Virus record (IMG/VR): IMGVR_UViG_3300032287_004484
Coordinates: 226,275-290,274 of that record
Strand: one strand, 5' to 3'
Length of the DNA: 64,000 nucleotides
The notes beneath the pieces are model-generated. The model saw only the letters and a list, made by a program, of their open reading frames with translations. It was not told the DNA's origin and made no database searches. Numbering within the stretch: the first letter of the stretch is position 1; each line of letters opens with the position of its first letter. A program made the position numbers and the translations under genes. Below are positions 5,618 through 63,675 of this stretch, in pieces.

Positions 5618-6412
5618 GTGGAAAAAATAAAATTCTCTAAGTCTAGGTATGGTTCTCAAAAAAATTGTTTAGGACAGTACTTTTATCAATATATTGAAAA
5701 GAGGTCTGTCCCTACTATTTTATGGCCAGGAACTTTAATAGGAACAGCTACTCACTTATTTATTGAGGAAAATTTAAATTCAATAGTTAAAGAAAAAGAT
5801 ATTAAAAAATTACCATTATTTGAAGAAACATTTTTTAAATGTAAAAAACAAGAAACATCTAATATCAAAGTTACTTACAGAACTCCAAAAAACTTTAATG
5901 AAAAAGAAGTTTTATCTAATAACAATAATTGGATAAAAGATATAATTAGATTTCTATTTTTATATTTACCTCCTGGTACAAAGATATTTGAAGAGGAAGT
6001 TGAGCAAGATATAGTAATAGATGATTTAATAATAAATGTTAAAGGTATTATTGATCTTCAAGTTAAAGATGAAGATAAATTATGGGTTTTTGATTTTAAA
6101 ACAACTAAAAATCCAAATTCTTGGATGTTTGTAAATTGGGAAAAAGACGCTCAAAGTCTTTCTTATTTGTGGTTAAAAAGAGAACAAAACCCATTAGGAT
6201 TTAATTATCTGATTTTTGATGCAGAAAATAAAATGATTTTTTCTAATAATATTGGATTTCAAGAAAATAGTAATGTAGAAAATAACTTAACTAATTTATT
6301 AAAAGATTTTATTAAAAATCATAAAGAATCTTTTGATAATAAAAATTGGAATCCAAGTCCAGATAATTGTAAATGGTGTCCATTTAAAGTTTTATGCCCA
6401 AGAAAACTTTAA
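5618..6412 (+). CDS. PD-(D/E)XK nuclease, RecB/Cas4-like
   Basis: GTATH, GIIDL...VFDFKTT, N-terminal Cys and C-terminal CKWCPFKVLC (Fe-S staple pattern). Confidence 0.85.
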   Translation: MEKIKFSKSRYGSQKNCLGQYFYQYIEKRSVPTILWPGTLIGTATHLFIEENLNSIVKEKDIKKLPLFEETFFKCKKQETSNIKVTYRTPKNFNEKEVLSNNNNWIKDIIRFLFLYLPPGTKIFEEEVEQDIVIDDLIINVKGIIDLQVKDEDKLWVFDFKTTKNPNSWMFVNWEKDAQSLSYLWLKREQNPLGFNYLIFDAENKMIFSNNIGFQENSNVENNLTNLLKDFIKNHKESFDNKNWNPSPDNCKWCPFKVLCPRKL

Positions 6413-7742: not shown

Positions 7743-7824
7743 GGATCTATGGTGAAATTGGTAGACACAAGAGACTTAAAATCTCTCGCATAAAAGCGTG
7801 CAAGTTCGATTCTTGCTAGATCCA
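7743..7824 (+). tRNA. tRNA-Leu(TAA), CCA not encoded
   Basis: Acceptor GGATCTA/TAGATCC, D-loop TGGTAGAC, anticodon arm AGAGA-CT TAA AA-TCTCT, long variable arm, T-loop GTTCGAT. Confidence 0.95.
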
Positions 7825-8816: not shown

Positions 8817-8890
8817 TGGCAAGTAGCTCAGTAGGTAGTAGCAAAGCACTGTTAATGCTTGGGTCGTAGGTTCGAATCCTACCTTGCCAG
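8817..8890 (+). tRNA. tRNA-Asn(GTT), CCA not encoded
   Basis: Acceptor TGGCAAG/CTTGCCA, anticodon arm AAGCA-CT GTT AA-TGCTT, T-arm GTAGG-TTCGAAT-CCTAC. Confidence 0.95.
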
Positions 8891-10463: not shown

Positions 10464-10538
10464 AAAATATAAAGTTTTAATGTTTGAGTAATTGAATTTT
10501 TACTTAAACATTAAAACAACTTGGTATATAATAATAAT

Positions 10539-11522
10539 ATGGGTGGAAAAGCTATTATTCCTATAATAGGGAAAGAAGCAAAAAGGTTTGATATAAATAT
10601 TAGAAATAATATAATATCAAACCTTTCAATTATTGACGATTTAGTTCCTGTAAGAGAAATTAAAGAGAAAAAAGATTTTGGAGACATAGATTTTTTATGT
10701 TATTCTGAATTAAAAAGAGAAGAAAAAAATAATCAAATAATCGTTGAAATTGAAAAAAATAATTATTCATTTCAAGGTAAAATTACTAACGATAATGTTT
10801 TTTCTTTAGCTTTTAGTGACTATCAAATAGATATTATTTTTATTTCAAAACAACATCTTAATACGAGTTATTATTATTTTGCTGATAACGATAGAGGAAA
10901 CCTAATAGGATCTATTTACCATGCTCTTAATTTTAATTATGGACATCAGGGTTTATATCTAAAATTAGATAATACTAAAATCCTTTTATCGAATGATACT
11001 GAATCTATTCTTAATTTCTTAGGTTGTGGTAATGTTTTTATTAAAAAGATTTTAAGTGACGGTTTTGATACTTTTGAAGAGATGTATAAACATATAACTG
11101 AAATACCCTATTTTAGTTCTCAATATTTTCAATTTGAAAACCTTAATAATAAGAATAGGTCACGTAATTCTAAAAGAAATACTTATAATAATTTTTTACA
11201 TTATTTAAAAGATAAAACTTTTAGTGATCCTACTCCTAATATTGAATACATGAAATATAAATCTTTATCATACTTTAATAAAGAAAAAGAGTATGTTTCT
11301 TTGTTAAAAGAACAAGAGAAAAATAAGATTATACGAAAAATGATTTCTGGTGATTTATTTTTTAATATCACTGGATTAAAAGAAAAAAAATTAGGTGAAT
11401 TTATTATTTTCTTTAAAGAGAGAAATAAATCAATAATTGAAAATATAGAAACTTATAATATAGAATATTTTGAGGAAAAAATAAAAAATGAATACGATAT
11501 TTTTATCAATAATCAAAGGTAA
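10539..11522 (+). CDS. putative Pol-beta-superfamily nucleotidyltransferase
   Basis: KKDFGDIDFL and later QIDIIF fit the GDxD...D pattern; probable start MGGKA at 10539, 6 nt after TATAAT. Confidence 0.6.
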   Translation: MGGKAIIPIIGKEAKRFDINIRNNIISNLSIIDDLVPVREIKEKKDFGDIDFLCYSELKREEKNNQIIVEIEKNNYSFQGKITNDNVFSLAFSDYQIDIIFISKQHLNTSYYYFADNDRGNLIGSIYHALNFNYGHQGLYLKLDNTKILLSNDTESILNFLGCGNVFIKKILSDGFDTFEEMYKHITEIPYFSSQYFQFENLNNKNRSRNSKRNTYNNFLHYLKDKTFSDPTPNIEYMKYKSLSYFNKEKEYVSLLKEQEKNKIIRKMISGDLFFNITGLKEKKLGEFIIFFKERNKSIIENIETYNIEYFEEKIKNEYDIFINNQR

Positions 11523-15642: not shown

Positions 15643-16800
15643 ATGAGGAATTTAGAAAAAATATTAGACCTTTGTCAAAAATCCGACAATTCAGTCTTAT
15701 TAAAGGGACCTCACGGAATAGGGAAGAGTGAAAGAGTAGAAGCATTCGCAAAAGAAAAAGGTTATCATTGCGAAATTTTATTTCTTTCTCACCAAGAAAC
15801 TGGAGATTTAATTGGTATTCCATATTTAGAAAATGGAAATACCGTATGGAGTACACCAATCTGGTTACAAAGAATTTATGATGCTTCTAAGAATGGAAAA
15901 ACGTGTGTATTATTCTTAGATGAATTAAACAGAGCAAGATTAGATGTTAGACAATCTGCTTTACAGTTAGTATTATCTAAGCAAATTCACCAGCACGTAC
16001 TTCCAAAAGATTCTTTAGTAGTAGCAGCAGTTAATCCAGAAGATGATTACCAAGTGTCTGAATTAGATCCAGCACTTTTAGATAGATTTGAAGCTATTGA
16101 ATTGAAAGCAAACACTGAAGAGTGGATTGAATGGGCTAGAAAAAAGTCAGTCAATGAAACAGTAGTTTCTTTTGTAGCAGATAATCCAGATAAATTGTGG
16201 TTCAAAACTAACAATGAAAATGAAATCAACCATCCTACTCCAAGAAGCTGGGTAAAAGTATCTAATTTTCTAAAAGTTTTAGAACTTGAAAAAGAAGCAG
16301 ATGAGGAAAAATTCTTTTTACTTCAAACTTTTGTAAATGGAAAGATTGGTAGAAGCGTTGGTAATCAATTTTCTATTTATTGGAAAGAAAAACAAGCACT
16401 TTCTATGGAAAGTATTGAAAAAGCAATTAAGAAAATTAAGAATAGGAAGAAAGAAAACATGGACGAAGCTATGGAGATACTAAAACCAGTTCTCTCTACT
16501 ATCGAAGTCATAAAACTTTCTCTTATTGGAGAGGACTTACTTAAAAAGTATATTCCAAAAACAGCTACTATTGCAACAATAGATAAAGCATTTGAAACCG
16601 CTTTTCCAGTTATGGCTTTTTTCTATTCTTTAGAATTAGAAGTTTCACATTCTATTCTAAAAGGTCTTAAAGAAAAAGACGATGAAAATATGAAAGAATT
16701 ATACGCTGGTTTAGCTCGTTGTGATTCAGCAGCTGCTGGAAAATTTAGAGAAAAAGAAATTTTCCGAAGGATTATAGATAAATTCGACAACAAGAAATAA
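15643..16800 (+). CDS. MoxR-like / dynein-related AAA+ ATPase
   Basis: GPHGIGKS, LFLDELNRA, AAVNP, LDPALLDRF, TPRSW. Confidence 0.92.
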   Translation: MRNLEKILDLCQKSDNSVLLKGPHGIGKSERVEAFAKEKGYHCEILFLSHQETGDLIGIPYLENGNTVWSTPIWLQRIYDASKNGKTCVLFLDELNRARLDVRQSALQLVLSKQIHQHVLPKDSLVVAAVNPEDDYQVSELDPALLDRFEAIELKANTEEWIEWARKKSVNETVVSFVADNPDKLWFKTNNENEINHPTPRSWVKVSNFLKVLELEKEADEEKFFLLQTFVNGKIGRSVGNQFSIYWKEKQALSMESIEKAIKKIKNRKKENMDEAMEILKPVLSTIEVIKLSLIGEDLLKKYIPKTATIATIDKAFETAFPVMAFFYSLELEVSHSILKGLKEKDDENMKELYAGLARCDSAAAGKFREKEIFRRIIDKFDNKK

Positions 16801-16970: not shown

Positions 16971-18230
16971 ATGGATAAAATCAACAAAGAAGTCTATGAA
17001 GAAACAATGGCTAATACTCTTTGGGGACAAGAAAATCAATATGTATTTTATGGTCACATAATTGCAGCCACAAAAGTACATTTTGATAATACACTACCTG
17101 CACCTGCTGGGGTATATTTCGCAAAAAGTCAATTTAATTTAGTGATTAATTTAGAAAAGTTTTCTGAATACTCTCTAAAAGAAAGAAGATCAATATTAGT
17201 TCACGAAGCTTTACATATAATTCTTAATCATATAGGTAGAGCAAAGAATAAAAGAAGATTTTGCTGGAATATATCAACAGATACTGCTTTAAATCAATTT
17301 ATCAAGGATTTACCGCCAGACTGTATGTTACCAGAAAAATTTGGATTAGAACCAAAATTATCTGCGGAGAATTATTATTCTTTTCTTAGAAAGAAAATTG
17401 ACGATAAAGAAATTTCTTTCAAAGTAATTTATGAAGACGGTTCTTCTGACGATAACAACAATGGAAATCCGCAGCAAGGCAATGGAAAGAAAATATCGAA
17501 AGTTATTATGAGGGTTAAATCTAAAAGTGGTGTCAAAGAATATGAAATTGACCCTCACGTAGCAGACGATCGTAACGAAGGTGAAGTAAATGAAGAATTA
17601 GTAAATCTTATGAGGGAGAAATTAATTCAACATGCTGAGAATAAAAGTAGGGGATTGATACCATCTGATATTGCAGATGAAATTGAAAAACTTCGTTCTA
17701 AGAAAATTGATTGGAAAAAGCATATTCGTAATCAAGCTTCTAATTCTTCCATAGATGTAGAAGAGTCTATAAAAAGAAGAAATCGTAGATTTATGAATCG
17801 AGTAGAAATTAAAGGATTTATAAAAACTTATTCTTCTAAAGGAGTAGTAATATTAGATACTTCTGGATCAGTTAGTAATGAATTTATTTCTAAAACTTTA
17901 GGAGAAATTGATAACTTATGTAAATCAACTAATTCTGAAGTCGAACTAATTCAGGTAGATGCTCAAGTACATAGTATTAAAAAATATACTCCTTCTAATA
18001 AGAAAGTAGGTATTGTTGGTAGAGGTGGTACTTATCTTTATCCAGCAATTGAACATATTAAAAATAAAAAAATTCGTTGTGACTATATAATAGTATTAAC
18101 GGATGGAGAAATTGAAAATTCTTGGAAAGAAGTACCTCAACAAAATATATTCTTTCTTTTACCCAAAGATGGAAAATTAGCGTTAGATATTTCTAATTTC
18201 AAAAAAGCAAAAGTTTTTAATATAGATTAA
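16971..18230 (+). CDS. VWA-domain protein with N-terminal HExxH metallopeptidase-like domain (DUF2201-type)
   Basis: LVHEALHIILNH; MIDAS-like LDTSGS, GRGGT, VLTDG. Confidence 0.9.
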   Translation: MDKINKEVYEETMANTLWGQENQYVFYGHIIAATKVHFDNTLPAPAGVYFAKSQFNLVINLEKFSEYSLKERRSILVHEALHIILNHIGRAKNKRRFCWNISTDTALNQFIKDLPPDCMLPEKFGLEPKLSAENYYSFLRKKIDDKEISFKVIYEDGSSDDNNNGNPQQGNGKKISKVIMRVKSKSGVKEYEIDPHVADDRNEGEVNEELVNLMREKLIQHAENKSRGLIPSDIADEIEKLRSKKIDWKKHIRNQASNSSIDVEESIKRRNRRFMNRVEIKGFIKTYSSKGVVILDTSGSVSNEFISKTLGEIDNLCKSTNSEVELIQVDAQVHSIKKYTPSNKKVGIVGRGGTYLYPAIEHIKNKKIRCDYIIVLTDGEIENSWKEVPQQNIFFLLPKDGKLALDISNFKKAKVFNID

Positions 18231-28411: not shown

Positions 28412-29341
28412 ATGAGAAATATATATATCCTTTATGGCCCACCTCTATCTGGTAAAACAACTTTTTCTAACCTTATAACTAAATACGATAAAGACATAAA
28501 AATTGTTTCAAGAGATGTTATTAGAGATAATTTAAACGATCACTCTAATTTACCTGAGATTGAAACCATAATAACTAAAATAGAGGAATCTTATTTTTCA
28601 TCTTTAATTACTCAATACGATATTATTTGTGATAATACTTTTTCTAAAGTTAAATACATTAAAGACTTCCTTAATTTAATAAAAAAAAGTAAAATAAAAA
28701 TTAAGGTTCGTCTTGTTGATTTTAGTGATATACCGTTTGATACACTATTAGAAAGATCTTTAAATCGTGATAGAAAAGTTGATCTGGTAGTAATTAAAAA
28801 ATTTTTTACAAGGTGTAAACAAAATTTAAAAAGTGTTATTGAATTAATTAATAATTTTAATAACGATTCTTCTTTTATTTCTGAATATAAACCAACAATC
28901 ATTAGTAAAATACCAATTATTAATAATAACGATAGGGCTATAATTGTTGATATAGATGGAACACTATCTCATAGTGGCGGATTAAGAAGTCCATTTGAAT
29001 ATGATAAAGTTATTAATGATGATATAGACGAAATTATTAGAGATATAGTTACTTCTTATAAAAATTCAAATCACAAAATAATAATTGTTTCAGGAAGGGA
29101 AGATTCTTGCTATAACATGACTTGTGATTGGTTAAATAAATATCGTGTTCCTTTTGATTTTTTATACATGAGAAAATATAAAGATTTTAGAAAAGATGCT
29201 ATTGTTAAAAAAGAAATATTTGATAAATATATTAAAGATAATTATAATGTTCTTTTTTGTTTAGATGATAGAAATCAAGTTGTAGAAATGTGGAGAAGCA
29301 TCGGAGTTAAATGTTTACAGGTTCAAGAAGGAAATTTTTAA
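28412..29341 (+). CDS. pseT: polynucleotide 5'-kinase / 3'-phosphatase (PseT/Pnkp-like)
   Basis: GPPLSGKTT kinase P-loop; HAD motif DIDGTL, SGR, DDR. Confidence 0.93.
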   Translation: MRNIYILYGPPLSGKTTFSNLITKYDKDIKIVSRDVIRDNLNDHSNLPEIETIITKIEESYFSSLITQYDIICDNTFSKVKYIKDFLNLIKKSKIKIKVRLVDFSDIPFDTLLERSLNRDRKVDLVVIKKFFTRCKQNLKSVIELINNFNNDSSFISEYKPTIISKIPIINNNDRAIIVDIDGTLSHSGGLRSPFEYDKVINDDIDEIIRDIVTSYKNSNHKIIIVSGREDSCYNMTCDWLNKYRVPFDFLYMRKYKDFRKDAIVKKEIFDKYIKDNYNVLFCLDDRNQVVEMWRSIGVKCLQVQEGNF

Positions 29342-30113: not shown

Positions 30114-30434
30114 ATGAAAGCAAAGAAAGGTTTAGTTCTATCAAAAGAAGATGAAGATATTCTTTTTAATCCTAATATTGTTAGTATTGGTTTATCAATC
30201 AAATATGTAAATGATGTTTCTAAAGTAAGAAATTTAAAGTTTGAAAAAATTTTAGAACAGTATTGTGAAGAATATGAATCTTTATGGGGAATAGATGAAA
30301 GTGAGATTTCTTTTTACATAAGAAAAATATTAAAAGGACCTTGGCCAAAAATGGAAAAATATTTGTCAGATCCTTTTTTACAGAAATATAAAATCTTCTT
30401 AGAAGAAAATAATTTTCAAGAACACTTGATTTAA
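30114..30434 (+). CDS. degenerate solenoid-family tagged protein (FQEHLI)
   Basis: FYIRKILKGPWPKME; convergent with the RNA ligase. Confidence 0.65.
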   Translation: MKAKKGLVLSKEDEDILFNPNIVSIGLSIKYVNDVSKVRNLKFEKILEQYCEEYESLWGIDESEISFYIRKILKGPWPKMEKYLSDPFLQKYKIFLEENNFQEHLI

Positions 30435-31444
30435 TCTTCTTTTAAAAGAAATTTATTACTGATTGCTTTAAATGATGTTCGATTAAGAATTTTAGTTCTT
30501 AAAACAATCCCTTCTCTTTCTGTATCTTTATGTAATAAAGATTTACCTTCTGCATAAGTCAATAATTCTTTCATGTTAAAAGGTAATTTAAAATCTTCAT
30601 CAATCATTGGAACTGTCTCTAATCCTAGATTTTTAATGATCGTTTTAAAATCATTAAAGTTATAATATTTCATAGTGAATATATCGAAAACATTAAAGAA
30701 TTTAATTTGATGTCCAGATATTTTATACTTATTACCTTGAATACCTTCACCAATTAATTCACCTTGTAAAGCAATATTATCTATTGATTTACTTTTTAAA
30801 ATATTTTCAATATTTAATTTTCTAACAGTAGACCAAAAAGTATTTTTATCGTCTTCTAGTAAATCTAAATTCCTAGAACAAACTCCAAAGACACCGTCTT
30901 TTAAATAAATAGTTATCGAACTACCATCACATTTTTCTGTGACATAGTATTGATCATCAACTAATTTATTATAATCTAAATTTTGGATTCTTTCTTCATC
31001 AGTTTTTGGAATTTCAGATGGGAAATTTCCTCTTGCAACTCCACTTAATTGTGCTGGAATAGGAGGTTCGTATTTTTGAATTCCTAACTCTTCTGTTAAA
31101 TCTTCACTTACATAAAAGTTTCTTTCTTTTAATAAAGAAGAATCAATTAAAGTTTTTATTGGAACTATTAATCCTTGACTTATAGTTCCTCTTAACTTAA
31201 CTGTCTTTAGACGAAAGCCTTCTTGATCACCCATTTTTTTATAAGAACTTTTTCTTAAAAATTCAAACACTGGATGAATTGGTAAAAAAGAATCAATCTC
31301 AAAATAAACACACATTTGTCTAACTTCAAAATCACCTTTTTTAACAACACAGTTCCATCCGTCTACTACAGCAACCTCAATAAGATCAGCCCCTTCTATA
31401 GGAACTAATTCTTGAACATATCTAATAGTGGCTAATTTTCTCAT
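30431..31444 (-). CDS. RNA ligase, DRB0094/Rnl2-like family with N-terminal OB-like domain
   Basis: MRKLATI...IEGADLIE; TEKCDGSS (motif I), LQGELIG, EREGIV, FKAIS. Confidence 0.92.
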   Translation of the reverse strand: MRKLATIRYVQELVPIEGADLIEVAVVDGWNCVVKKGDFEVRQMCVYFEIDSFLPIHPVFEFLRKSSYKKMGDQEGFRLKTVKLRGTISQGLIVPIKTLIDSSLLKERNFYVSEDLTEELGIQKYEPPIPAQLSGVARGNFPSEIPKTDEERIQNLDYNKLVDDQYYVTEKCDGSSITIYLKDGVFGVCSRNLDLLEDDKNTFWSTVRKLNIENILKSKSIDNIALQGELIGEGIQGNKYKISGHQIKFFNVFDIFTMKYYNFNDFKTIIKNLGLETVPMIDEDFKLPFNMKELLTYAEGKSLLHKDTEREGIVLRTKILNRTSFKAISNKFLLKED

Positions 31445-31476: not shown

Positions 31477-31782
31477 TTAAAAAAATTTAATTAATATAGT
31501 TGGATGTTTTTCATTAATATCTTCTATTAGAAAAAGAGTTAAACCAAGATCAATTGTTGTTACAGATTTATCATCTGGCGATTCTGTTGTTAAATATGAA
31601 ACACCAGGGCCAAAAGTCATATAATAATTATCAGCAATATAGTGACCTTCTTCGGGTGAAGGAATGTGAAAATCATTTAGGTTTGAATATTTTTTCATTG
31701 CATCTTTATATAGATGATCTTCTAAAACTTGCACTGATAATTTATCGTCAATTTGAATAATATTGTTTTTTAAAACTTTCAT
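31477..31782 (-). CDS. divergent Lcl/DUF1566-like small protein
   Basis: YKDAM...FHIPSPEE resembles the W-x-L-P-x-x-x-E-L motif. Confidence 0.45.
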   Translation of the reverse strand: MKVLKNNIIQIDDKLSVQVLEDHLYKDAMKKYSNLNDFHIPSPEEGHYIADNYYMTFGPGVSYLTTESPDDKSVTTIDLGLTLFLIEDINEKHPTILIKFF

Positions 31783-31785
31783 TAT

Positions 31786-32979
31786 TTATTTCTTACTCCA
31801 TTTGTCAGGCGAATCACCTTCTGAGTGATAATCACCATATTTATCATATCCACCTCGCCAAGTACCATCTTTCCAAACACCATTCTTCCATGTTCCTTTA
31901 TACCAAAGACCGTTTTCCCAAATACCATCTTCCCAAATTCCTTTAAACCAAGTACCATACTCCCAAACACCATTCTTCCATGTTCCTTTATGCCAAGTAC
32001 CATCTTCCCAAGTACCACCCCACCAAATACCAACCCACCAAGTACCGTCTTTCCAAACACCATCCTTCCACGTTCCTTTATGCCAAGTACCATCTTCCCA
32101 TGTTCCTTTCCACCAAATGCCATTTTCCCATTGACCACCTTCCCAGGTGCCATTATACCAATCACCTTTTTCCCAATTTATTTTTATTTCGTGTTGATCA
32201 TGTAAATATGTTGTATAAACAGCATCTTTTGATATATTTTTTTTGATAAGTTCATCATAGTTTTTAATGTATAATGATAATTGTTCTTGTTTTGATGTGT
32301 CAGAGTTTTGAGAAAAAACTTTTTTAAGGTAATTTATATCTTTATTAGCTGACCTCCAAGATTTACCTTCATTATCACTATAAGAAAGAGGAATTATAAT
32401 ATCATTATTATATGATACTAAAACTAAACCATCATGTCTACCAGTAAAAACTATCCCATCAATTATTTTTATTAATAACTTTTTATATACATTATAAACA
32501 TAAGAAGCTATATCAGATGAATAATTTGATGTTTTCTGTAATTCTAATATTTTTTTTTCATCTATTTGTTTATACTTATCATATTTATCAAAATCAAAAT
32601 ATTTCATTTGATCTATAATAAACATATCTTTTGATGTTTTTATTTTTTTACTAACAGATGATTTTAAAAAATTATCATAATCAAAAAACATAAATCTATT
32701 TAAAGAATTAATCATAAACTTAACAATTATATCACCATAATTTGATTTCATTCTTTGTCTAAATTGAGATTCTAATTCATAGGTACTATAAAATCCTTTT
32801 CCATAAGTATCTCCAACACCTGTCCTAAAACCTGTATTATAAATTTTATTTATAAGATCTTCTGTTTTAGTTCTATGATAAACAGTAGCTTTATTACTAT
32901 AAATACTTTCAAAAATAATATTATTTAAGTTTTTAGTAAATTTTTTATTAGTCATTTTTTTAATCCTTATATATTCCAT
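31786..32979 (-). CDS. putative ADP-ribosyltransferase-fold protein with GxWxx pentapeptide repeats (paralog 1)
   Basis: VYHRT...GF...YGKGFYST; about 21 GxWxx repeats; probable start MTNKKF at 32955 with IFE|S. Confidence 0.6.
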   Translation of the reverse strand: MEYIRIKKMTNKKFTKNLNNIIFESIYSNKATVYHRTKTEDLINKIYNTGFRTGVGDTYGKGFYSTYELESQFRQRMKSNYGDIIVKFMINSLNRFMFFDYDNFLKSSVSKKIKTSKDMFIIDQMKYFDFDKYDKYKQIDEKKILELQKTSNYSSDIASYVYNVYKKLLIKIIDGIVFTGRHDGLVLVSYNNDIIIPLSYSDNEGKSWRSANKDINYLKKVFSQNSDTSKQEQLSLYIKNYDELIKKNISKDAVYTTYLHDQHEIKINWEKGDWYNGTWEGGQWENGIWWKGTWEDGTWHKGTWKDGVWKDGTWWVGIWWGGTWEDGTWHKGTWKNGVWEYGTWFKGIWEDGIWENGLWYKGTWKNGVWKDGTWRGGYDKYGDYHSEGDSPDKWSKK

Positions 32980-34130
32980 TTATCTGGTGAATCACCTTGT
33001 GGATGAAATCTTCCAAATTTATCTTTTCCTCCATGCCAAGTACCACCTAACCAAGTGCCACCTTTCCAAGTTCCATCTAACCAATCACCGTTTTTCCAAA
33101 TGGCGTTATTCCAAGTACCTTTTTCCCAAATGCCTTTTTCCCAAATTGGATTATCATCATCATTCCAAAATATACTTCCAAATGTTCCATCCTTCCATGT
33201 TCCATCTTCCCAAGTTCCACCTTCAAAATAACCTTTTAACCATGTTCCTTTTTTCCAAGTACCATTTTCCCATGTACCATTATACCAAACTCCACTATAC
33301 CAAATCCCATTTTCCCAAGTAAAATAATTTCTATATTTTATATCATAATTTTCTATATCGTCTATTTCGTAATCAGCATCACTAGATATTTTAGCATCCT
33401 CAATCCAATGTTTTATTTTAGTGTCTTTTTTATATTTAACTTTAACGTCGTCAGTATATTGAGAGAATACTTTTTTTAAATAGTTTATATCTTTATTTGG
33501 TTTAATCCAGTCTTTTCCATCATTTAAAGAAAAAGATAATGGGATAATTAAATCAGTATTATAACAAACAATGTTTTTGCCTTCATCATCAGATGTAAAA
33601 AATACTCCATCAATATATCTTTTAATTTTAAAATGACCACCAAAATAGCTTAATATTTGATTAAAAATATCAGAACTATATTTTGATTCTCGAAATTCAA
33701 AATCTTCTAATGATTGTTCTGGTTCTAAAAATTGAAAATTAAAGTGTTTTAATTGATCAATAATAAAATTTTTTTTCTTTGATTTTAATTTTTTAAAAAG
33801 ATTAGTTTTTTTAAATTCTTTATAATCTAAAACTAAAAAATTATTTATAGATTTAATCATCATTTTAACTATAATCGAACCATATTTGTGTTCCATATAA
33901 TCTTTATTTCGACCTATTTGATGTTTTAAATCGTATGTAGCATACATACCTATTCCATAATTAGATGTATCTTTAGGCTTGTATCCATCTTTAAAAATAA
34001 GATTTATTAAATCTTTTTCTTTTGTTCGATGATATACAGTAGCTTTTGCACCATAAATATCTTCTAAAAGAATTTCTTTTAAACTTTCACTAAATAATTT
34101 TTCTTTATATAAATCCATTTTACTTCTCAC
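32967..34130 (-). CDS. putative ADP-ribosyltransferase-fold protein with GxWxx repeats (paralog 2)
   Basis: VYHRT...YGIGMYAT; same repeat and GDSPDKW end; ATCATAAAAATA at 34141-34152. Confidence 0.6.
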   Translation of the reverse strand: MRSKMDLYKEKLFSESLKEILLEDIYGAKATVYHRTKEKDLINLIFKDGYKPKDTSNYGIGMYATYDLKHQIGRNKDYMEHKYGSIIVKMMIKSINNFLVLDYKEFKKTNLFKKLKSKKKNFIIDQLKHFNFQFLEPEQSLEDFEFRESKYSSDIFNQILSYFGGHFKIKRYIDGVFFTSDDEGKNIVCYNTDLIIPLSFSLNDGKDWIKPNKDINYLKKVFSQYTDDVKVKYKKDTKIKHWIEDAKISSDADYEIDDIENYDIKYRNYFTWENGIWYSGVWYNGTWENGTWKKGTWLKGYFEGGTWEDGTWKDGTFGSIFWNDDDNPIWEKGIWEKGTWNNAIWKNGDWLDGTWKGGTWLGGTWHGGKDKFGRFHPQGDSPDKWNI

Positions 34131-34230
34131 TCAATTTAATTATTTTTATGATTAAATGTTTTATGTATTAATATTTTAATTTTAGACACTTATTATTTTT
34201 AAATAATATAATTAATTAAGGGAAAAATAT

Positions 34231-35517
34231 ATGTCACTACAAAGAGCTAAAAAACTAATATCTGATCCATTCAACAAAAGAGATAAAGATTCTAAAAATA
34301 TAGTACAATTATGTAACAAAATTAAAACAGATTTTTTATCTATTGATAATATTTTAAAATTTAGAAATAGAATGGACTATTTAGTTCCAGAAAAAAGATT
34401 ACCAGATGATTGTCTATTAATAGTGATTGATACAGAGACAACAGGTTTAATGCAACAAAATAAATTAGATGTTTTTACTGATAATCTTGGTAATAAACAC
34501 GAATATATTTCTTATCGTAATCAAATTAGAGAAATAGGAGCTGTTTCTTATAATTGGGATTTAAACTTTGAAGATAATAGTGATAAAACTTTTTTTCATG
34601 GAAAAATAAAAGATTCTGTTCTTGATGAATATAATTCTGTAGAAAAAATTGAAAACAATTTAATTTCTAAATTTCAAGAAACATATCTAGAAAATAAAGA
34701 AAATATCATAAGTGCTTTTTCTTTAGCACAAGCAAAAAGTGGAAAATTTAATCCAGATTATCAAGTTTTTAAAAGTAATTTTCCATCTATGTTTGAATCT
34801 TTAAATGAATTTAATAAAGAAACTTTAATTAAATATATCTTCAAATATAATCTATTACAAGCAATAAGTTTTATGAATCACTCAGATAAAGAAATTTATA
34901 AATATCCTTTTGACCATTCTAAAACTTATAAAATCAATAATAATTATAGTGATGAATTACATCTTATAGAATCACTTTTTGATTTTATTGAATCTAAAAA
35001 GAAATTATATTCTAATGTTATTATAGGAGCTCATAATTTGCCTTACGATGAAGGTATGATTAAAGGAGCAATAACATCTGCAATAGATTATTATACTTAT
35101 ATAGATGAAAATCCTTCTAAAAAAGAATATTATGGTTTTTTACTAGAAAGACATAAAAATATATTTTATAACAAACTAAATACTATTGATATTTTTAAAG
35201 ATATTTTAAATACTAAAAAATATGGTAATCGTTTAGTTAGTTTATATTCTCATAGGAACGATCTTAAAAAAGTAAAGATGTTAAAACATATTGTAAAATC
35301 ATTATCAAATAAAAAATATTCTAGTGGAAGTTTTAGTGTTGCACTAGGTAGTTTAGCACCTTTATCTTTAAATCAAGATTTTCATACAACAATTAACGAT
35401 ATTTATGTTACGGTAGAAACTCTTAAATATTATTTTTGTATTCCAATAATATTAGATTATAATCATAAATTAAAAGTAAGTGATGACTTACAAGAAACAA
35501 TAGGAAATATTTTATGA
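34231..35517 (+). CDS. DnaQ-like DEDDh 3'-5' exonuclease
   Basis: VIDTETTG (ExoI), GAHNLPYD (ExoII), HTTIND (ExoIII). Confidence 0.8.
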   Translation: MSLQRAKKLISDPFNKRDKDSKNIVQLCNKIKTDFLSIDNILKFRNRMDYLVPEKRLPDDCLLIVIDTETTGLMQQNKLDVFTDNLGNKHEYISYRNQIREIGAVSYNWDLNFEDNSDKTFFHGKIKDSVLDEYNSVEKIENNLISKFQETYLENKENIISAFSLAQAKSGKFNPDYQVFKSNFPSMFESLNEFNKETLIKYIFKYNLLQAISFMNHSDKEIYKYPFDHSKTYKINNNYSDELHLIESLFDFIESKKKLYSNVIIGAHNLPYDEGMIKGAITSAIDYYTYIDENPSKKEYYGFLLERHKNIFYNKLNTIDIFKDILNTKKYGNRLVSLYSHRNDLKKVKMLKHIVKSLSNKKYSSGSFSVALGSLAPLSLNQDFHTTINDIYVTVETLKYYFCIPIILDYNHKLKVSDDLQETIGNIL

Positions 35518-42105: not shown

Positions 42106-43116
42106 ATGGTTAATATAAATTTACTTGAAAAAATGGTTGAAGAAGATTTAGTCAATGCTACTGATCACCCTACTCTTCCAATTACGATCTTTAATTATTC
42201 TAAATTTTGTCAATTCAAAAAGGAATGGAATGAAATAACTCTTCAATGTAGAGGATTAATCTTAGACGATAATTATAATGTTATCGCTAAACCTTTTCCT
42301 AAGTTTTTTAATTTAGAAGAAGAAAAAAGTATTCCTAACGAACCTTATACGATTTATGAAAAATTAGATGGATCACTAGGTATTCTTTTCTTTTATGAAG
42401 GTTGGCATATGGCAACTAGAGGATCCTTCATTTCTGAACAGTCTGTTAAAGCTAAACAAATATTAATCCAAAAATATTCTCATCTTTTAGATTCTTTAAA
42501 TCGTGATTGGACTTATCTATTTGAAATAATTTATCCTGAGAATCGTATTGTATTAAACTACGGTGATCAAGAAGATATTATAATGCTTGGCATTTTTGAT
42601 CGCAATTCCTTACAAGAAATAGAATTAAAAGATTATGGTTTTCCATATTTAAAACCTAGCCAATACAATTCACTATCTTTTAAAGAACTTAAAAATCTTA
42701 ACATCAAAAATCACGAAGGTTTTGTAATTAAGTTTGAAAATGGAAAAAGAATTAAAATTAAATTTGAAGACTATGTTCAATTACATGGAATCGTTACTGA
42801 ATTTAGCAATAAAAAAGTATGGGAGATGTTAAGCACTGGAGCAAATTTTAATGATCTTCTAGAAGTTGTTCCAGATGAATTCTTTCAAAAAGTTAAAGAT
42901 GTTAAAGAAGAATTAGAAAATCAATTTTCTTCTATTAAACAAAAATCAATTTCTATTGCTAATGATGTTAAAAATTTTCCTGATCGTAAATCAATAGCAG
43001 TTCACTTACTTAATAATCACAAAGATGTAATGTCTGTTGTATTTGGATTATTAGATAATAAAGATGTAGATAAAATAATTTGGAAAATGATTCAGCCAGA
43101 TTTTGAAAAAATTTAA
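42106..43116 (+). CDS. rnlA: T4 Rnl1-like RNA ligase
   Basis: CRGLIL, PFPKFFN, EKLDGS, TRGSF, FEII, EGFVI, KIKF. Confidence 0.92.
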   Translation: MVNINLLEKMVEEDLVNATDHPTLPITIFNYSKFCQFKKEWNEITLQCRGLILDDNYNVIAKPFPKFFNLEEEKSIPNEPYTIYEKLDGSLGILFFYEGWHMATRGSFISEQSVKAKQILIQKYSHLLDSLNRDWTYLFEIIYPENRIVLNYGDQEDIIMLGIFDRNSLQEIELKDYGFPYLKPSQYNSLSFKELKNLNIKNHEGFVIKFENGKRIKIKFEDYVQLHGIVTEFSNKKVWEMLSTGANFNDLLEVVPDEFFQKVKDVKEELENQFSSIKQKSISIANDVKNFPDRKSIAVHLLNNHKDVMSVVFGLLDNKDVDKIIWKMIQPDFEKI

Positions 43117-50774: not shown

Positions 50775-51701
50775 ATGAGTGCAAATGACTATTTAGAAAA
50801 ACTCCGACAACAAGCGATGGCAGCTTTAGACGGTGGTCCAAAAAAGTATATAAATGAAAATGAGTGGGCTCCAACAGATGTTCCAACAAAAGTAAGATTT
50901 TTACCTTTACCTGAAAAAGAAGGTAAGTTAAATTTCCCTTACATGACTCATACTTATCACTATATTCAAGGTGGTAGAGATGATGGAAAAGACATTAAAC
51001 TCTTCGTACCAAAGAAAGTAAATAAAGATGGAGCACTAGTTGAAGATCCAATAGATGTATTTGTAAGAAAACTTTACGATACAAAAATTGATAGTGAAAT
51101 TAAGATTGCAGCTTCTTTAAAAAGAAAAAGAGCTTTTTATTTTAATGCTCTTGTATATGAAGATGGTGTTACTCCAACTCTTAAAGTTATAGTTGATACA
51201 TCTGGAGAAGGAAAATTAGCAAGAAGAATCTGTTCTGTAATGGGAATACCATTTTGTAAAGATATTGATGACAAATGGTTTCCTGATAAAGATTTTGCTT
51301 ATGATCCAGATAAACCATATTTTAATCTTGTCGACACTACCTCTGGATATGATTTTAAAATTAAAAAAAGCATAACTGGAAAAGATCCATGGAATTTTGA
51401 TTACAATGAATCTTTCCCAATTACTAATAAAGGACTTAGACCTCTAACTGATACTGAACAGTCGATGTTAAAGAGTGCTCCTGATCTTTATAATTATGTA
51501 AATTATGAATCTGACTTTAATAAAATTGAAGAATATTTAAATAGGGCTATTAGCCATTTAAGTATTAATAAATCAAGTGGAAGTACTGCTTCTCCAAAAG
51601 CACCGTTTACTTCTAAAACAACAGCTGCTCCATATGTTCAATCAGCTACTGTTGAAGATGATTTATCAGAAGAAGATCTTAGAGCTCAATTATTAGATTA
51701 A
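50775..51701 (+). CDS. 32: gp32-like single-stranded DNA-binding protein
   Basis: KVRFLP, NALV, GYDFKIK, acidic C-tail; next to UvsX. Confidence 0.85.
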   Translation: MSANDYLEKLRQQAMAALDGGPKKYINENEWAPTDVPTKVRFLPLPEKEGKLNFPYMTHTYHYIQGGRDDGKDIKLFVPKKVNKDGALVEDPIDVFVRKLYDTKIDSEIKIAASLKRKRAFYFNALVYEDGVTPTLKVIVDTSGEGKLARRICSVMGIPFCKDIDDKWFPDKDFAYDPDKPYFNLVDTTSGYDFKIKKSITGKDPWNFDYNESFPITNKGLRPLTDTEQSMLKSAPDLYNYVNYESDFNKIEEYLNRAISHLSINKSSGSTASPKAPFTSKTTAAPYVQSATVEDDLSEEDLRAQLLD

Positions 51702-51710
51702 TTTTAAAAC

Positions 51711-51733
51711 AAGCCACTTATTAAAAGTGGCTT
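51711..51733. terminator. hairpin between gp32 and uvsX
   Basis: AAGCCACTT/AAGTGGCTT stem; weak T-tail. Confidence 0.5.
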
Positions 51734-51753
51734 CATATGACTATGAGGTTAAA

Positions 51754-52908
51754 ATGGCTAAAAAAGAAAAAGGTGAAGTGACAGAATTAGATCTTCTCCA
51801 AAAAGAAATAAATTCATTTATTAAAACTAATTCTAAAATAGAAGTCGAGAGTTTAGAGGACCATGATTTTTTCCCTGAATTTTTAGACACTGGTAATTTT
51901 GCACTCAACTGGGCAATCTGTGGTAAATTCAAAGGCGGATTCCCTGCTACAAAATGTGTAGAAATGTTTGGTGCAGAAGGAAGTGGTAAATCTTTAATGC
52001 TAATAAAATTAGCAGGTGAAAATATTAAAAAAGGCGGTCTTTCTTATGTCGTTGATACAGAAGACGCTGTTAATCCTAATTTTGCACGAATTATTATGAA
52101 TGATCCTGAAGGAAAGATAATTAATAAAATCCAAAGAATTGATACTATTGATACAATAGAACAATTAAAAGGTTTTTTAATTAATCTTGCTGAAAAGAAA
52201 ATTGCTATGAAAACAGAGATCCCTATTTTTGTGGGGATAGATTCTATTTCTCAATTAAGTTCTGATAAAGAAATGGAAGATTCTAGGACTGGTAATAGTG
52301 CTCGTGATATGACTAAACAGCAAGCAATGAGAGCGCTCTTTCGAGTTGTTAATCGTTACTTACGGGCTGCTAATATGACTCTTGTTGTTCTAAGTCATAC
52401 GAGTGCTGCTATTGGAGCTTTTGGTAATCCTGTAACAGCTGCTAATCACGGAGGTGGAGTTAAATTTGCTTCATCTGTTAGGGCTTGGATTACTTCGTCT
52501 AAAGAGGTTTCTGATTCTGCTGGGATACCACTAGGAGTTAGAATTAATTTTAAAATAGAAAAGAATCGTCTTGTTTTTAAAGGTAGAAAAGCAAGTGTTA
52601 ATCTTTCATTTAAAAAAGGAATTCAAAAGTATAGTGGATTACTAGAGCTTCTCGCTGATAATGATGTAATTAAATTAAGCACCAAAGATATTAAAAAGAC
52701 AACTAAAGTTGTTTTTGAAGGTGAAGAATTTAGTGCTTCTAAGTTAGAGGAATGGATAGCACAAAGTGGTGGCGAAGAAAAAGTTTTAGAAAGATGGCAA
52801 AAACATTTAGATGATATTTATGGAAACCAAAACATCGAAGAATCTTTTGAAGAAGAAGGAGACGATGAAGAAGATGTTTTGGTTCCATTAATGGAAGTTG
52901 CTGATTGA
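51754..52908 (+). CDS. uvsX: UvsX/RecA-like recombinase
   Basis: DTGNFALN, GAEGSGKS, IDSI, GGGVKFASS, KNR; start MAKKE at 51754 with GAGG SD; no intein. Confidence 0.93.
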   Translation: MAKKEKGEVTELDLLQKEINSFIKTNSKIEVESLEDHDFFPEFLDTGNFALNWAICGKFKGGFPATKCVEMFGAEGSGKSLMLIKLAGENIKKGGLSYVVDTEDAVNPNFARIIMNDPEGKIINKIQRIDTIDTIEQLKGFLINLAEKKIAMKTEIPIFVGIDSISQLSSDKEMEDSRTGNSARDMTKQQAMRALFRVVNRYLRAANMTLVVLSHTSAAIGAFGNPVTAANHGGGVKFASSVRAWITSSKEVSDSAGIPLGVRINFKIEKNRLVFKGRKASVNLSFKKGIQKYSGLLELLADNDVIKLSTKDIKKTTKVVFEGEEFSASKLEEWIAQSGGEEKVLERWQKHLDDIYGNQNIEESFEEEGDDEEDVLVPLMEVAD

Positions 52909-62157: not shown

Positions 62158-63675
62158 ATGAAAAAGGTAAAAATTAAAATAGGTAAACTATTTGAAGCTA
62201 TTGAAAAATATGAAAAACATAACTTTTATACAGATGAAGAATATTATCCAAAAACAGAAATTAAATTAAAAGATAAAAATGGTGATTTTCAAAAAGTTCC
62301 AGCACTAATAAAAAAACGAGATCAAATCTTAAAAATTGTATTACAAAATAAAGATCTTCTTAAGGTAGGTACAAATCATATTATTTGTACCCAAAATTGG
62401 GAAGAAAAAAAATGTAAAGATTTAAACCTAAAAGATAAACTCATTAAAAACAATGCAAGTCTAGTTGGCATAGAAAGCATAAAACTAGAAGATGAAGAAG
62501 ATGTATTTGATCTTCAAATAGATAGTGAGGATCACTTATATTCTGATGCCAAAGGATATGTTCACCACAATACTTTTATTATGTCTATGGCGTGTAGTCT
62601 TTATAATACATCTAAAATTTTAGTTCTTTTTAATCGTACAGAACTTCTTTTTCAAACACGAGAAAAATTTGTTAAAGAGTATGGATTCAAAGAAGATGAA
62701 GTTGGTATAATTGGTGGCGGATCTTATGATGATTCGTGTAGAATAACACTTCTAACAACACAAAGTTATCAAAATATCTTTCATCTTTTTCCAGATATAA
62801 AAGTTATTATTACTGATGAGTGTCACGAAACTGGTAGAACGTCAACAGCAGAGAAGATTATTTATTCTTGTCAAAGCGCTTCTATTAAAATAGGTTTGTC
62901 AGCAACTGTATCAGTAATTGAAAATCCTTACGAAAAAATGAAATTACATGGTAACATAGGTCCAATCATACATAAGGTACCATACGATAAATTACGTGAT
63001 ATGGGAACACTAGCAACAGTATCAGTAACTATGTATAAAATAGGTGTTATAAATTCTATACCAATAATTGGATCTTGGAATGATGTTTATGAAACAATAA
63101 AAATTAAAAAACCAGAAGATATAGAGATTTATGAAAAATTAAATTATGAAATCGTTAAAGAAGGTAATAACATAAGTGCTAGAAAATTTATTTGTTATGG
63201 TGATGAAAGCAATTTATATATTTATAATTCCACTAGAAATGAACTCATTGCTAAAATAGCATCGCAAAAAGAAAGAGTTCTTATCCTATTCACTAAGTTA
63301 GCACATGGAAGAGAATTATTAAAACTTATTCCACATGGCATTTTAATTAGTGGTGATGATGATCGTTACGCTCGTGAACAAGCTAAACAAAAAATAAAAG
63401 ATGATCTAAACACAGTAATTATTGCGAGTTCTATTTTTGATGTCGGAGTAGATATACCAGCAATTAAAACACTTATCCTAGCTGGTAGTTCTGTAAGTAA
63501 TGTTAGAGTCATGCAAAAGATAGGTAGAGCAACTAGAAAAGATTTAAACACTCTTAAAGAAGACGCTGAAATAATTGATTTCATGCAATATGATAATCCT
63601 TTATCTTTAAAGCAAAGTAAAAAAAGAAAGAAGATATACGAAAATTTATTAAAGGTTCCTGTAACTTTAATATAA
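62158..63675 (+). CDS. uvsW: 138-aa split-intein IntC fused to the UvsW-like helicase C-fragment
   Basis: GTNH (block B), VFDLQI (block F), YVHHN|T (block G, ends 62571); extein has TDECH, SAT and IASSIFDVGVDIP...QKIGRATR. Confidence 0.92.
   Translation: MKKVKIKIGKLFEAIEKYEKHNFYTDEEYYPKTEIKLKDKNGDFQKVPALIKKRDQILKIVLQNKDLLKVGTNHIICTQNWEEKKCKDLNLKDKLIKNNASLVGIESIKLEDEEDVFDLQIDSEDHLYSDAKGYVHHNTFIMSMACSLYNTSKILVLFNRTELLFQTREKFVKEYGFKEDEVGIIGGGSYDDSCRITLLTTQSYQNIFHLFPDIKVIITDECHETGRTSTAEKIIYSCQSASIKIGLSATVSVIENPYEKMKLHGNIGPIIHKVPYDKLRDMGTLATVSVTMYKIGVINSIPIIGSWNDVYETIKIKKPEDIEIYEKLNYEIVKEGNNISARKFICYGDESNLYIYNSTRNELIAKIASQKERVLILFTKLAHGRELLKLIPHGILISGDDDRYAREQAKQKIKDDLNTVIIASSIFDVGVDIPAIKTLILAGSSVSNVRVMQKIGRATRKDLNTLKEDAEIIDFMQYDNPLSLKQSKKRKKIYENLLKVPVTLI

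Follow-up and report, generated by a model that had tools for sequence, protein, structure and literature searches.

The question raised by this locus is what two adjacent genes, each joining a head that resembles ADP-ribosyltransferases (ARTs) to a long tail of tryptophan-rich pentapeptides, might do for the uncultured freshwater phage that carries them. The genes lie at nucleotides 31786-34130 of the window, by which we mean the whole stretch of 64,000 nucleotides analysed here, namely the last 64 kb (positions 226,275 to 290,274) of the 290,274-bp IMG/VR virus record IMGVR_UViG_3300032287_004484. This record has direct terminal repeats, and the GC content of the sequence is approximately 23%. 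From the models we predict that each protein consists of a catalytic-type ART domain of ~200 residues, a helical linker and a capped beta-helical rod. We consider it moderately probable that the pair belongs to an uncharacterised and essentially phage-restricted family of ART-fold enzymes. These would act inside the infected cell and transfer single ADP-ribose units from NAD+ to a host macromolecule, to which the repeat rod would direct them as a targeting module. Phages are already known to possess ART effectors; what is new here is a family that lies outside every sequence-defined ART family tested, has a signature of its own and carries an undescribed tryptophan pentapeptide helix.

The paralogous pair and its N-terminal domain

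The products of the two genes, called here the downstream and the upstream paralogue (Table 1), are 44% identical across their full length (E 6e-95), and the genome contains no further copies of this gene. Both possess the motif TVYHRT, a second motif which reads YGKGFYST in one copy and YGIGMYAT in the other (common form YG.G.Y.T), and a third of the form (D/E)G..(I/V)V.Y (IDGIVFTGRHDGLVLVSYNNDIIIP and IDGVFFTSDDEGKNIVCYNTDLIIP). An earlier interpretation made from the letters alone (the sequence-only reading) had pointed to the tandem genes, these motifs, the repeats and the GDSPDKW end, all of which are present.

The N-terminal domain was modelled by AlphaFold2 (AF2) with a predicted local distance difference test score (pLDDT) of 90.4 and a predicted template modelling score (pTM) of 0.85. 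Strands were placed at residues 30-37, 63-66, 84-90, 96-98, 175-180, 184-189 and 195-201, and a helical insert of ~70 residues (aa 101-172), in which Gln124 and Ser155 are conserved, is found between strands 4 and 5. All of the 50 best VIA matches to this model are ART-superfamily proteins. Foldseek gave as best match in BFVD a 'PolyVal ADP-ribosyltransferase' (E 5e-6, prob 1.0); five of the nine BFVD matches with E<=1e-3 are ART-PolyVal-like, PARP-catalytic, MuF-fused or N-acetyltransferase-containing, while the other four have uninformative names. The AFDB cluster matches are ART-PolyVal-like and PARP catalytic domains, with which the Swiss-Prot models agree, and the PDB matches comprise the cyanophage A4 ejection protein, AcrIF11 (6kyf), MbcT and PARPs. 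The AF2 model and the fold searches together show the split beta-sheet core of ARTs in the predicted structure, and they support an ART fold, probably of the H-Y-acid type, for this domain. The sequence-only reading had also proposed an ART fold, and structure prediction followed by Foldseek agrees with it.

In the model His35 lies on strand 1 within V-Y-H-R-T and Tyr64 on strand 2 within G-K-G-F-Y, and Asp183 (Glu in the upstream copy) is situated just before the penultimate strand, after the strand 'DGIVFTG' and a three-residue loop. These three residues are predicted to converge in space, and the hairpin register indicates that Glu24 is probably beside His35. Three features are specific to this family: the Arg that follows the His, where canonical H-Y-E ARTs have Gly, the invariant Glu24, and the helical insert. 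The N-domains are basic (pI ~9.3-9.5).

Family size and conservation

An exhaustive HMMER search over 1.84 billion representatives gave 674 clusters (50% identity) at E<=1e-3, and 351 at E<=1e-10. Conservation was assessed in 187 members: His35 is found in 185/186, Arg36 in 184/186, Tyr64 in 186/186, Gly82 in 187/187, Gly175 in 183/183 and Glu24 in 177/181. Position 183 is Asp in 168 of the 182 members compared and acidic in 170. As far as sequences can tell, this is the pattern of an active enzyme and not of a decaying domain.

This bears upon the possibility that the head is catalytically dead, that is, a pseudo-enzyme or a sensor of NAD+ or ADP-ribose, and that the tryptophan-repeat rod is the functional part, acting for example upon a host protein as binder, decoy or inhibitor, or else binding glycans or the cell wall. 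Tail-only proteins are widespread in phages, an Arg stands in place of the Gly after the His, and pseudo-PARPs such as TASOR occur among the VIA matches. The constant part of the family is, however, the head and not the tail, and that the His, the Tyr and the acidic residue hardly vary among the 187 members is what one would expect of an active site. We regard a dead head as the least probable of the explanations considered.

The family is essentially viral and metagenomic. Searches by tblastn with three different N-domains against 50,697 GenBank phage records gave no match to the N-domain, only to tails, and megablast of 12 kb of the window gave no match. Eleven IMG/VR loci, on contigs of 20-140 kb, were found to carry the family in a search with a narrow alignment, and among 185,579 species genomes only two small contigs of metagenome-assembled genomes were detected by a pattern-based search, which finds close relatives only. 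Four related IMG/VR contigs of 106-140 kb (L018-L021) contain at 5977-6210 a 77-aa open reading frame (ORF) which corresponds to the first third of the ART head only, with 60% identity over aa 5-59, and which may represent a copy that has been truncated or split. A PHROG of unknown function, phrog_6170, matches 12/61 family members. The only recurrent Pfam matches in the 61 N-domains, BNR/Asp-box and Sortilin, were rejected since they arise from an SxDxGxTW hairpin at the end of the domain and not from homology.

A number of observations weigh against an active ART. Pfam and PHROG scans of both proteins gave no family match to the N-domain, and no match to the PF18760, PF00644 and PF01885 models was found in the genome; for PF18760 this extends to either protein at E<=1, to the 61 family N-domains and to the genome at E<=10. 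A PDB sequence-profile search with the 61-sequence profile returned zero matches. Comparison by hhalign with the ART-PolyVal-like domain of the homologous protein P0093 was weak (E 0.002, probability 13%); the homologue search for that domain gave no more than two sequences, which is insufficient for a strong profile. The Gly after the His of canonical H-Y-E ARTs is replaced by Arg, and Asp183 is a putative equivalent of the catalytic Glu by strand order and by motifs aligned by eye. Macro (a partner that processes ADP-ribose) and NadV (NAD+ salvage) were sought in the genome and were not found. Lastly, the locus sequence is matched in freshwater and other metagenome DNA runs and in no RNA run. 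The sequence-only reading had not recognised the domain combination, which is indeed undescribed in Pfam and PHROGs.

Relation to known ADP-ribosyltransferases

Among viral models the best structural neighbour is ART-PolyVal (PF18760), which is likewise a phage-encoded ART-fold domain. By eye the order of the motifs is the same (h-Y-H-x-T-T, G-x-G-h-[HY], D-G-h-I, and an acidic residue plus h-V-h), and the ART-PolyVal-like domain inside one family member reads Y-H-G-T-T, G-E-L-G-V-H-F, D-G-L-I and E-x-V-V-F. The present family differs in failing to match the PF18760 model, in the weak profile-profile comparison, in Arg for Gly after the His and Asp for Glu, in its helical insert of 70 residues, and in overall architecture, as its proteins are mostly 350-650 aa with repeat tails and not giant MuF-linked polyvalent proteins.

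With the ARTs of the PARP/diphtheria-toxin type (H-Y-E) the domain shares the split beta-sheet core and the placing of the His within h-h-H-x-[TS] of strand 1 and of the Tyr within G-x-G-x-Y, and many PARP catalytic domains appear among the structural matches. However, PF00644 is unmatched in both proteins, the 61 N-domains and the genome, the structural match at low root-mean-square deviation (rmsd) is often limited to the first ~80 residues, the third putative catalytic position is Asp, and the domain is without a regulatory or helical PARP subdomain. One of the best Foldseek matches in the PDB (prob 0.96-0.99) is AcrIF11 (6kyf), a small phage ART which renders a defence protein inactive, but with 137 residues, no tail and 9-12% identity, which amounts to no sequence similarity, it is a neighbour at the level of the fold only.

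The Alt, ModA and ModB proteins of coliphage T4 offer a functional analogy, which we propose here: they are phage ARTs that modify host proteins at takeover and they include paralogues in adjacent genes. They differ in belonging to the R-S-E class and in having no repeat tails, and Alt is packaged by means of a capsid-targeting sequence which has no counterpart in the present proteins. The motifs of the R-S-E class (Arg on strand 1, S-T-S, E-x-E) are not found in the pair, which has H-R, G-x-G-x-Y and D-G instead, and R-S-E toxins are lower in the VIA structural list.

The presence of MbcT, NatT and RES toxins among the best VIA and Swiss-Prot AFDB matches raises the alternative of an NAD+-degrading enzyme (a glycohydrolase or phosphorylase, MbcT- or RES-like) that lowers host NAD+ or destroys NAD+-derived defence signals. 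We judge this to be very unlikely. The motifs are H-Y-acid and not R-E-S, the viral proteins nearest in structure are PolyVal/PARP-type transferases, a hydrolase of small molecules would have little use for a variable targeting tail, and the NAD+ salvage gene that would afford self-protection was not found in the phage genome.

The tryptophan-repeat tail

The downstream array consists of 22 uninterrupted x-x-W-x-x units, 21 of which start with G, whereas the upstream array has ~18 units, arranged as two runs that are interrupted at aa 318-332. The sequence-only reading had counted about 15-21 pentapeptides with a DNA periodicity of 15 bp; the repeats and the periodicity are borne out, and the counts are refined to these values. 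The consensus is G-[T/I/V]-W-[E/K]-[D/N/G/K], and Trp accounts for 26/131 tail residues, far beyond chance. Tandem Repeats Finder detected periods of 15, 30, 45 and 90 nt over 31858-32175 and of 15 nt over 33036-33321. Before the array come a helix and a short beta cap, and at its end stands the conserved GG.DK.G..H..GDSPDKW sequence, which is GGYDKYGDYHSEGDSPDKW and GGKDKFGRFHPQGDSPDKW in the two copies. In addition, ORFs at 31782-32165 (-), 31825-32205 (+), 31980-32246 (+), 32987-33322 (+) and 33055-33231 (+), of 58-127 aa and in other frames or on the other strand, cover the repeats; these were rejected as genes and are stop-free by-products of the repetition.

AF2 modelled the tail as a beta-solenoid, as the sequence-only reading had anticipated, with pLDDT ~97 and two-residue strands every five residues. 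In a wide structural search right-handed beta-helices superposed on this model at 2.2-3.9 A, including bactofilin (2.2 A over 92 residues), pectate lyase (2.9 A) and Ag43 (3.3 A). For left-handed hexapeptide helices and for the budworm antifreeze protein the Z values were good but the rmsd was ~11 A, which indicates mirror topology. These results support a right-handed beta-helix, although its geometry is provisional because AF2 is documented to give confident but unrealistic solenoids for repeats (PMC11795689). ESMFold was less confident for the whole protein (pLDDT 0.65). There are also grounds for a folded, capped solenoid which do not depend upon AF2, namely the strictness of the period, the occurrence of beta-branched and turn-forming positions, the conservation of the caps and a natural variant. 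This variant, P0003 from another sample, is 96% identical to the 31786-32979 product, and its array is shorter by exactly one pentapeptide, the DGTWR at the end, which shows that copy number changes in five-residue steps between strains.

The coil is probably one of 15 residues with three sides and three pentapeptides, as deduced from alignment tables and not from coordinates. The ratio of aligned model to target residues is ~0.75 for 20-residue coils, ~0.85-0.9 for 18-residue coils and ~1.0 for a 15-residue antifreeze helix, and the similarity between repeats is highest for units that are 3, 6, 9 or 12 apart. Together with the 45- and 90-nt DNA periods, these values point to 15 residues per coil and not to the 20-residue Rfr coil.

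The Rfr pentapeptide-repeat proteins (MfpA, Qnr, AlbG, Np275/276) resemble the tail in their strict five-residue period, in their central hydrophobic residue and in the right-handedness that is predicted for it. They superpose upon the model at 3.4-3.8 A over 126-134 residues, with values of 3.4-3.5 A for Np275/276, EfsQnr, AlbG and MfpA. The present consensus is nevertheless G-[TIV]-W-[EK]-[DNG] and not A-[DN]-L-x-x, the Pfam pentapeptide model (PF00805 and relatives) found no match in either protein at E<=1, and the tail probably has 15 residues and three sides per turn as compared with a four-sided coil of 20. Nor does the tail appear to be a DNA mimic, a possibility raised by the sequence-only reading, as it is near neutral (net charge ~-4 per 130 residues; family mean -0.02 per residue).

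Short Gly/Trp-rich repeats are also found in MORN proteins, and this resemblance explains why a tail-only protein of phage PspYZU05 (see below) is labelled 'phosphatidylinositol 4-phosphate 5-kinase 5-like'. A MORN/PIP5K identity was rejected: the period is 5 residues against ~23 in MORN (YxGxWxxGxxxGxG), there is no Pfam MORN match, and the label is an artefact of automatic annotation.

Tail exchange and tandem arrays

Across the family the head is constant, and it is joined not only to GxWxx tails but alternatively to leucine-rich-repeat (LRR)-like tails (22-residue repeats, 'LTSLEGAP..VGG.F.C..N'), ankyrin, DUF285, WG_beta_rep, DUF4116, Lcl_C and several kinds of helical repeats. This fits a constant enzyme with exchangeable targeting modules. 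Conversely, the GxWxx module is widespread in phages as stand-alone proteins of 100-230 aa. The T4-like Pseudomonas phage PspYZU05 encodes one such tail-only protein of 203 aa (KY971610.1, 33437-34048; L022:3878-4489) in its early region, ~4 kb from RNA ligase A.

Tandem arrangement recurs as well. A related huge phage, represented by a 399-kb JGI contig, has at least five ART paralogues (L007:2-9119) of 395+ (cut by the end of the locus), 503, 805, 635 and 372 aa. Their tails contain 1-4 complete cassettes per protein, and in each cassette an N-cap 'HWI..AKIS.D' is combined with GxWxx repeats and an end of the form 'GGYDK.G.FHP.GDSPDKW'. Tandem pairs are also present in loci L016 and L017.

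A GNAT-fold domain of ~190 aa with the motif 'STGxSW...FFG..GFVAVR...YKLVGVAG' is fused to the head in several homologues, N-terminally in P0093, P0097, P0099, P0132 and P0157 and C-terminally in P0139, and a gene for this fold adjoins the ART gene in L007 (1237-2202) and L016 (2293-2868). The domain has no Pfam match, and it is absent from the present genome.

Genomic context

The ART pair, a 101-aa ORF and an RNA ligase gene form one tightly packed co-directional block, in which the probable start of the downstream paralogue (ATG 32955) comes directly after the stop of the upstream gene. No terminator-like sites were found within the block in a promoter/terminator scan, and promoter-like sites, as judged by a sigma-70 scan, are no more frequent than in shuffled sequences. 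The 101-aa ORF is kept at the same position in the 399-kb relative (42% identity), and the Lcl_C domain, to which its predicted fold is similar, is also present as the C-terminal tail of another member of the ART family. The gene divergent to the block has no PHROG match.

Table 1. Features of the locus and of the surrounding window
Feature	Nucleotides	Strand	Remarks
Downstream paralogue	31786-32979	-	397 aa as listed ORF
Downstream paralogue, probable real start	ATG 32953-32955	-	AAGGA 7 nt upstream; 389 aa
Downstream paralogue, ART-fold domain, aa 20-215	32335-32922	-	Predicted from AF2 model, fold searches and conservation
Downstream paralogue, key residues	Glu24 32908-32910; His35-Arg36, His 32875-32877; Tyr64 32788-32790; Asp183 32431-32433	-	
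Downstream paralogue, pentapeptide array, aa 267-376	31852-32181	-	22 in-frame units; modelled as right-handed beta-helix
Downstream paralogue, C-terminal cap	31789-31851	-	GYDKYGDYHSEGDSPDKWSKK; conserved
Upstream paralogue	32967-34130	-	387 aa as listed; predicted ART-fold N-domain, helical linker and GxWxx beta-helix tail
Upstream paralogue, probable real start	ATG 34116-34118	-	383 aa (P0010 is the 383-aa form); homologues begin MDLYK
Upstream paralogue, ART-fold domain, aa 20-215	33486-34073	-	Profile match 6.6e-69
Upstream paralogue, key residues	Glu23 34062-34064; His34-Arg35, His 34029-34031; Tyr63 33942-33944; Glu183 33582-33584	-	
Upstream paralogue, pentapeptide array, aa 268-367	33030-33329	-	~18 units, two runs, break at aa 318-332
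Upstream paralogue, C-terminal cap	32970-33029	-	GKDKFGRFHPQGDSPDKWNI; conserved
ORF with Lcl_C/DUF1566-like predicted fold	31477-31782	-	101 aa; directly downstream of the pair; Atlas TM ~0.7
RNA ligase	30431-31444	-	PHA02142 OB-fold and RNA_ligase domain; last gene of the co-directional block
AT-rich intergenic region	34131-34230	.	Presumed promoter region, separating the block from the divergent gene at 34231
Divergent neighbour	34231-35517	+	428 aa; weak RNase_T-type exonuclease signal (E 0.006, first 45 profile positions)
Pnkp	28412-29341	+	HAD_PNKP, 6.7e-49
T4 Rnl1-like ligase	42106-43116	+	phrog_562, 1.5e-70
gp32-like single-strand DNA-binding protein	50775-51701		
RecA/UvsX-like protein	51727-52908		
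Helicase	62158-63675		
DNA-polymerase-like ORF	10521-11522		
tRNA-Leu(TAA)	7743-7824	+	
tRNA-Asn(GTT)	8817-8890	+	

Genes of T4 style for replication, recombination and RNA repair are found in the window; the RNA-repair kit is full and is accompanied by an extra ligase. No structural gene was recognised in the window near the ART pair. Elsewhere, the neighbours of homologues include DNA polymerases, methylases, thymidylate synthase, dCMP deaminase, an SMC-like ATPase and DnaB.

These contexts bear upon the claim, made in the sequence-only reading, that the proteins are targeted to the virion. They might be packaged and injected with the DNA, as T4 Alt and the polyvalent/MuF ARTs are, so as to modify the host before phage expression. 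Among the proteins closest to them in structure are ART-PolyVal domains, a MuF-fusion protein and the ejection protein of cyanophage A4. A small number of family members are very large, with several domains and 963-1466 aa, and one of them has a second ART-PolyVal-like domain. A survey of viral NAD+/ADP-ribose systems argues, moreover, for an enrichment of ARTs in myoviruses, which is consistent with delivery (PMC9503650). On the other hand, the structural likeness is at fold level only, and no structural, portal, MuF or protease gene is found near the pair here or in nine homologous contexts. The pair appears to be co-transcribed with the RNA ligase, in a block set among genes for Pnkp, the gp32-like and UvsX-like proteins and a helicase, and homologues stand beside genes for DNA polymerases, methylases, thymidylate synthase and DnaB. 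Most members begin just 5-20 residues ahead of the conserved core, there being no shared N-terminal packaging signal and no conserved extension that could be used as a capsid-targeting sequence. Injection thus did not hold up well, and we consider it distinctly unlikely.

The proximity of RNA-repair genes suggests a further alternative, namely that the ART domain acts upon nucleic acid as part of the RNA-repair kit, by taking over the function of KptA/Tpt1 (the NAD+-dependent removal of a 2'-phosphate), by ADP-ribosylating RNA or DNA ends, or by modifying a host anticodon nuclease, while the tail binds an RNA-processing partner. The pair, the small ORF and the RNA ligase constitute one block, and their order is conserved in the 399-kb relative, where the orthologous small ORF and RNA ligase lie downstream of the ART array. 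In a second lineage (L012-L015, ~41% identical) RNA ligases and RtcB lie within 6 kb, the window itself holds Pnkp and the T4 Rnl1-like ligase, the N-domains are basic, and canonical KptA was sought in the genome and not found. KptA-type ARTs beside RNA ligases are known in jumbo phages (PMC9503650), a comparable genomic setting. The pair, however, gives no PF01885 match and has neither the N-terminal winged-helix RNA-binding lobe nor the R-H-R-R tetrad of KptA/Tpt1. A basic pI is to be expected at 23% GC, and tails of protein-binding type (LRR, ankyrin) argue for protein targets. In addition, the T4-type Pnkp/Rnl1 pathway creates no 2'-phosphate. The linkage to RNA ligases occurs in two of ~7 lineages, the five others having none nearby. 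It is suggestive, and chance proximity in an 'early gene' region is a fair alternative because the window itself holds three ligase-type genes. Taken as a whole, a role in RNA repair seems unlikely.

A few other observations were made. Both tRNA anticodons in the window match the codon bias of this 23% GC genome. A MoxR-like AAA+ ATPase (AAA_5; 15643-16800, +) is followed by a DUF2201 VWA-like protein (16971-18230, +) which carries a putative metallopeptidase N-domain; the pairing of the two is conserved. Logan contigs from four runs were compared with the locus. An exact match was obtained in one run, the probable source of the sequence; tail-to-tail, repeat-mediated 'joints' (85% likeness) and fragmented Logan contigs in sister samples were set aside as uninterpretable effects of assembly or paralogy.

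Proposed function and significance

The explanation that we favour is that of an intracellular effector. The proteins would be made inside the infected cell, co-transcribed with the RNA ligase from a non-structural region, and would use NAD+ to mono-ADP-ribosylate a host macromolecule. The repeat rod would serve as a module for substrate recognition or localisation. Since the same head recurs with interchangeable repeat tails and in tandem arrays, the family may comprise effectors of host takeover or counter-defence which are retargeted in an arms race through tail exchange and tandem duplication. An intracellular effector fits what is known of viral ARTs, which are common, present in multiple copies in jumbo phages, and mostly fast-evolving conflict proteins (PMC9503650).

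Three more far-reaching readings may be put forward, although they appear rather unlikely. First, the head would be a new ART clade with the signature E...Y-H-R-T / G-x-G-x-Y / D-G, used by tailed phages as a plug-and-play modifying module, given new targets through exchange of its repeat tail and joined in some phages by a GNAT acetyltransferase as partner. Second, the G-x-W-x-x tail would be a previously unseen class of right-handed, three-sided solenoid with 15 residues per turn and stacked tryptophans, which also circulates alone. Third, in the lineages in which the genes share an operon with RNA ligases, the target might be a component of a host defence that cleaves tRNA, or RNA ends as such, and ADP-ribosylation would then be connected with phage RNA repair independently of KptA.

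Phage ARTs, among them T4 Alt/ModA/ModB and AcrIF11, are of central importance in host takeover and counter-defence. The present pair opens up a large family, with hundreds of clusters at 50% identity, that has been missed entirely by current domain libraries, and this family offers clear candidate catalytic residues together with a natural series of exchangeable targeting tails. According to surveys, many fast-evolving ARTs are found in jumbo phages (PMC9503650). Should the heads prove inactive, the tail-only relatives would still mark a widespread phage repeat protein. If they are active, they would represent a new effector family in the repertoire of phage-host conflict, a system in which to study how substrate specificity is rewired through tail swapping, and possibly a new tryptophan-based beta-helix scaffold.

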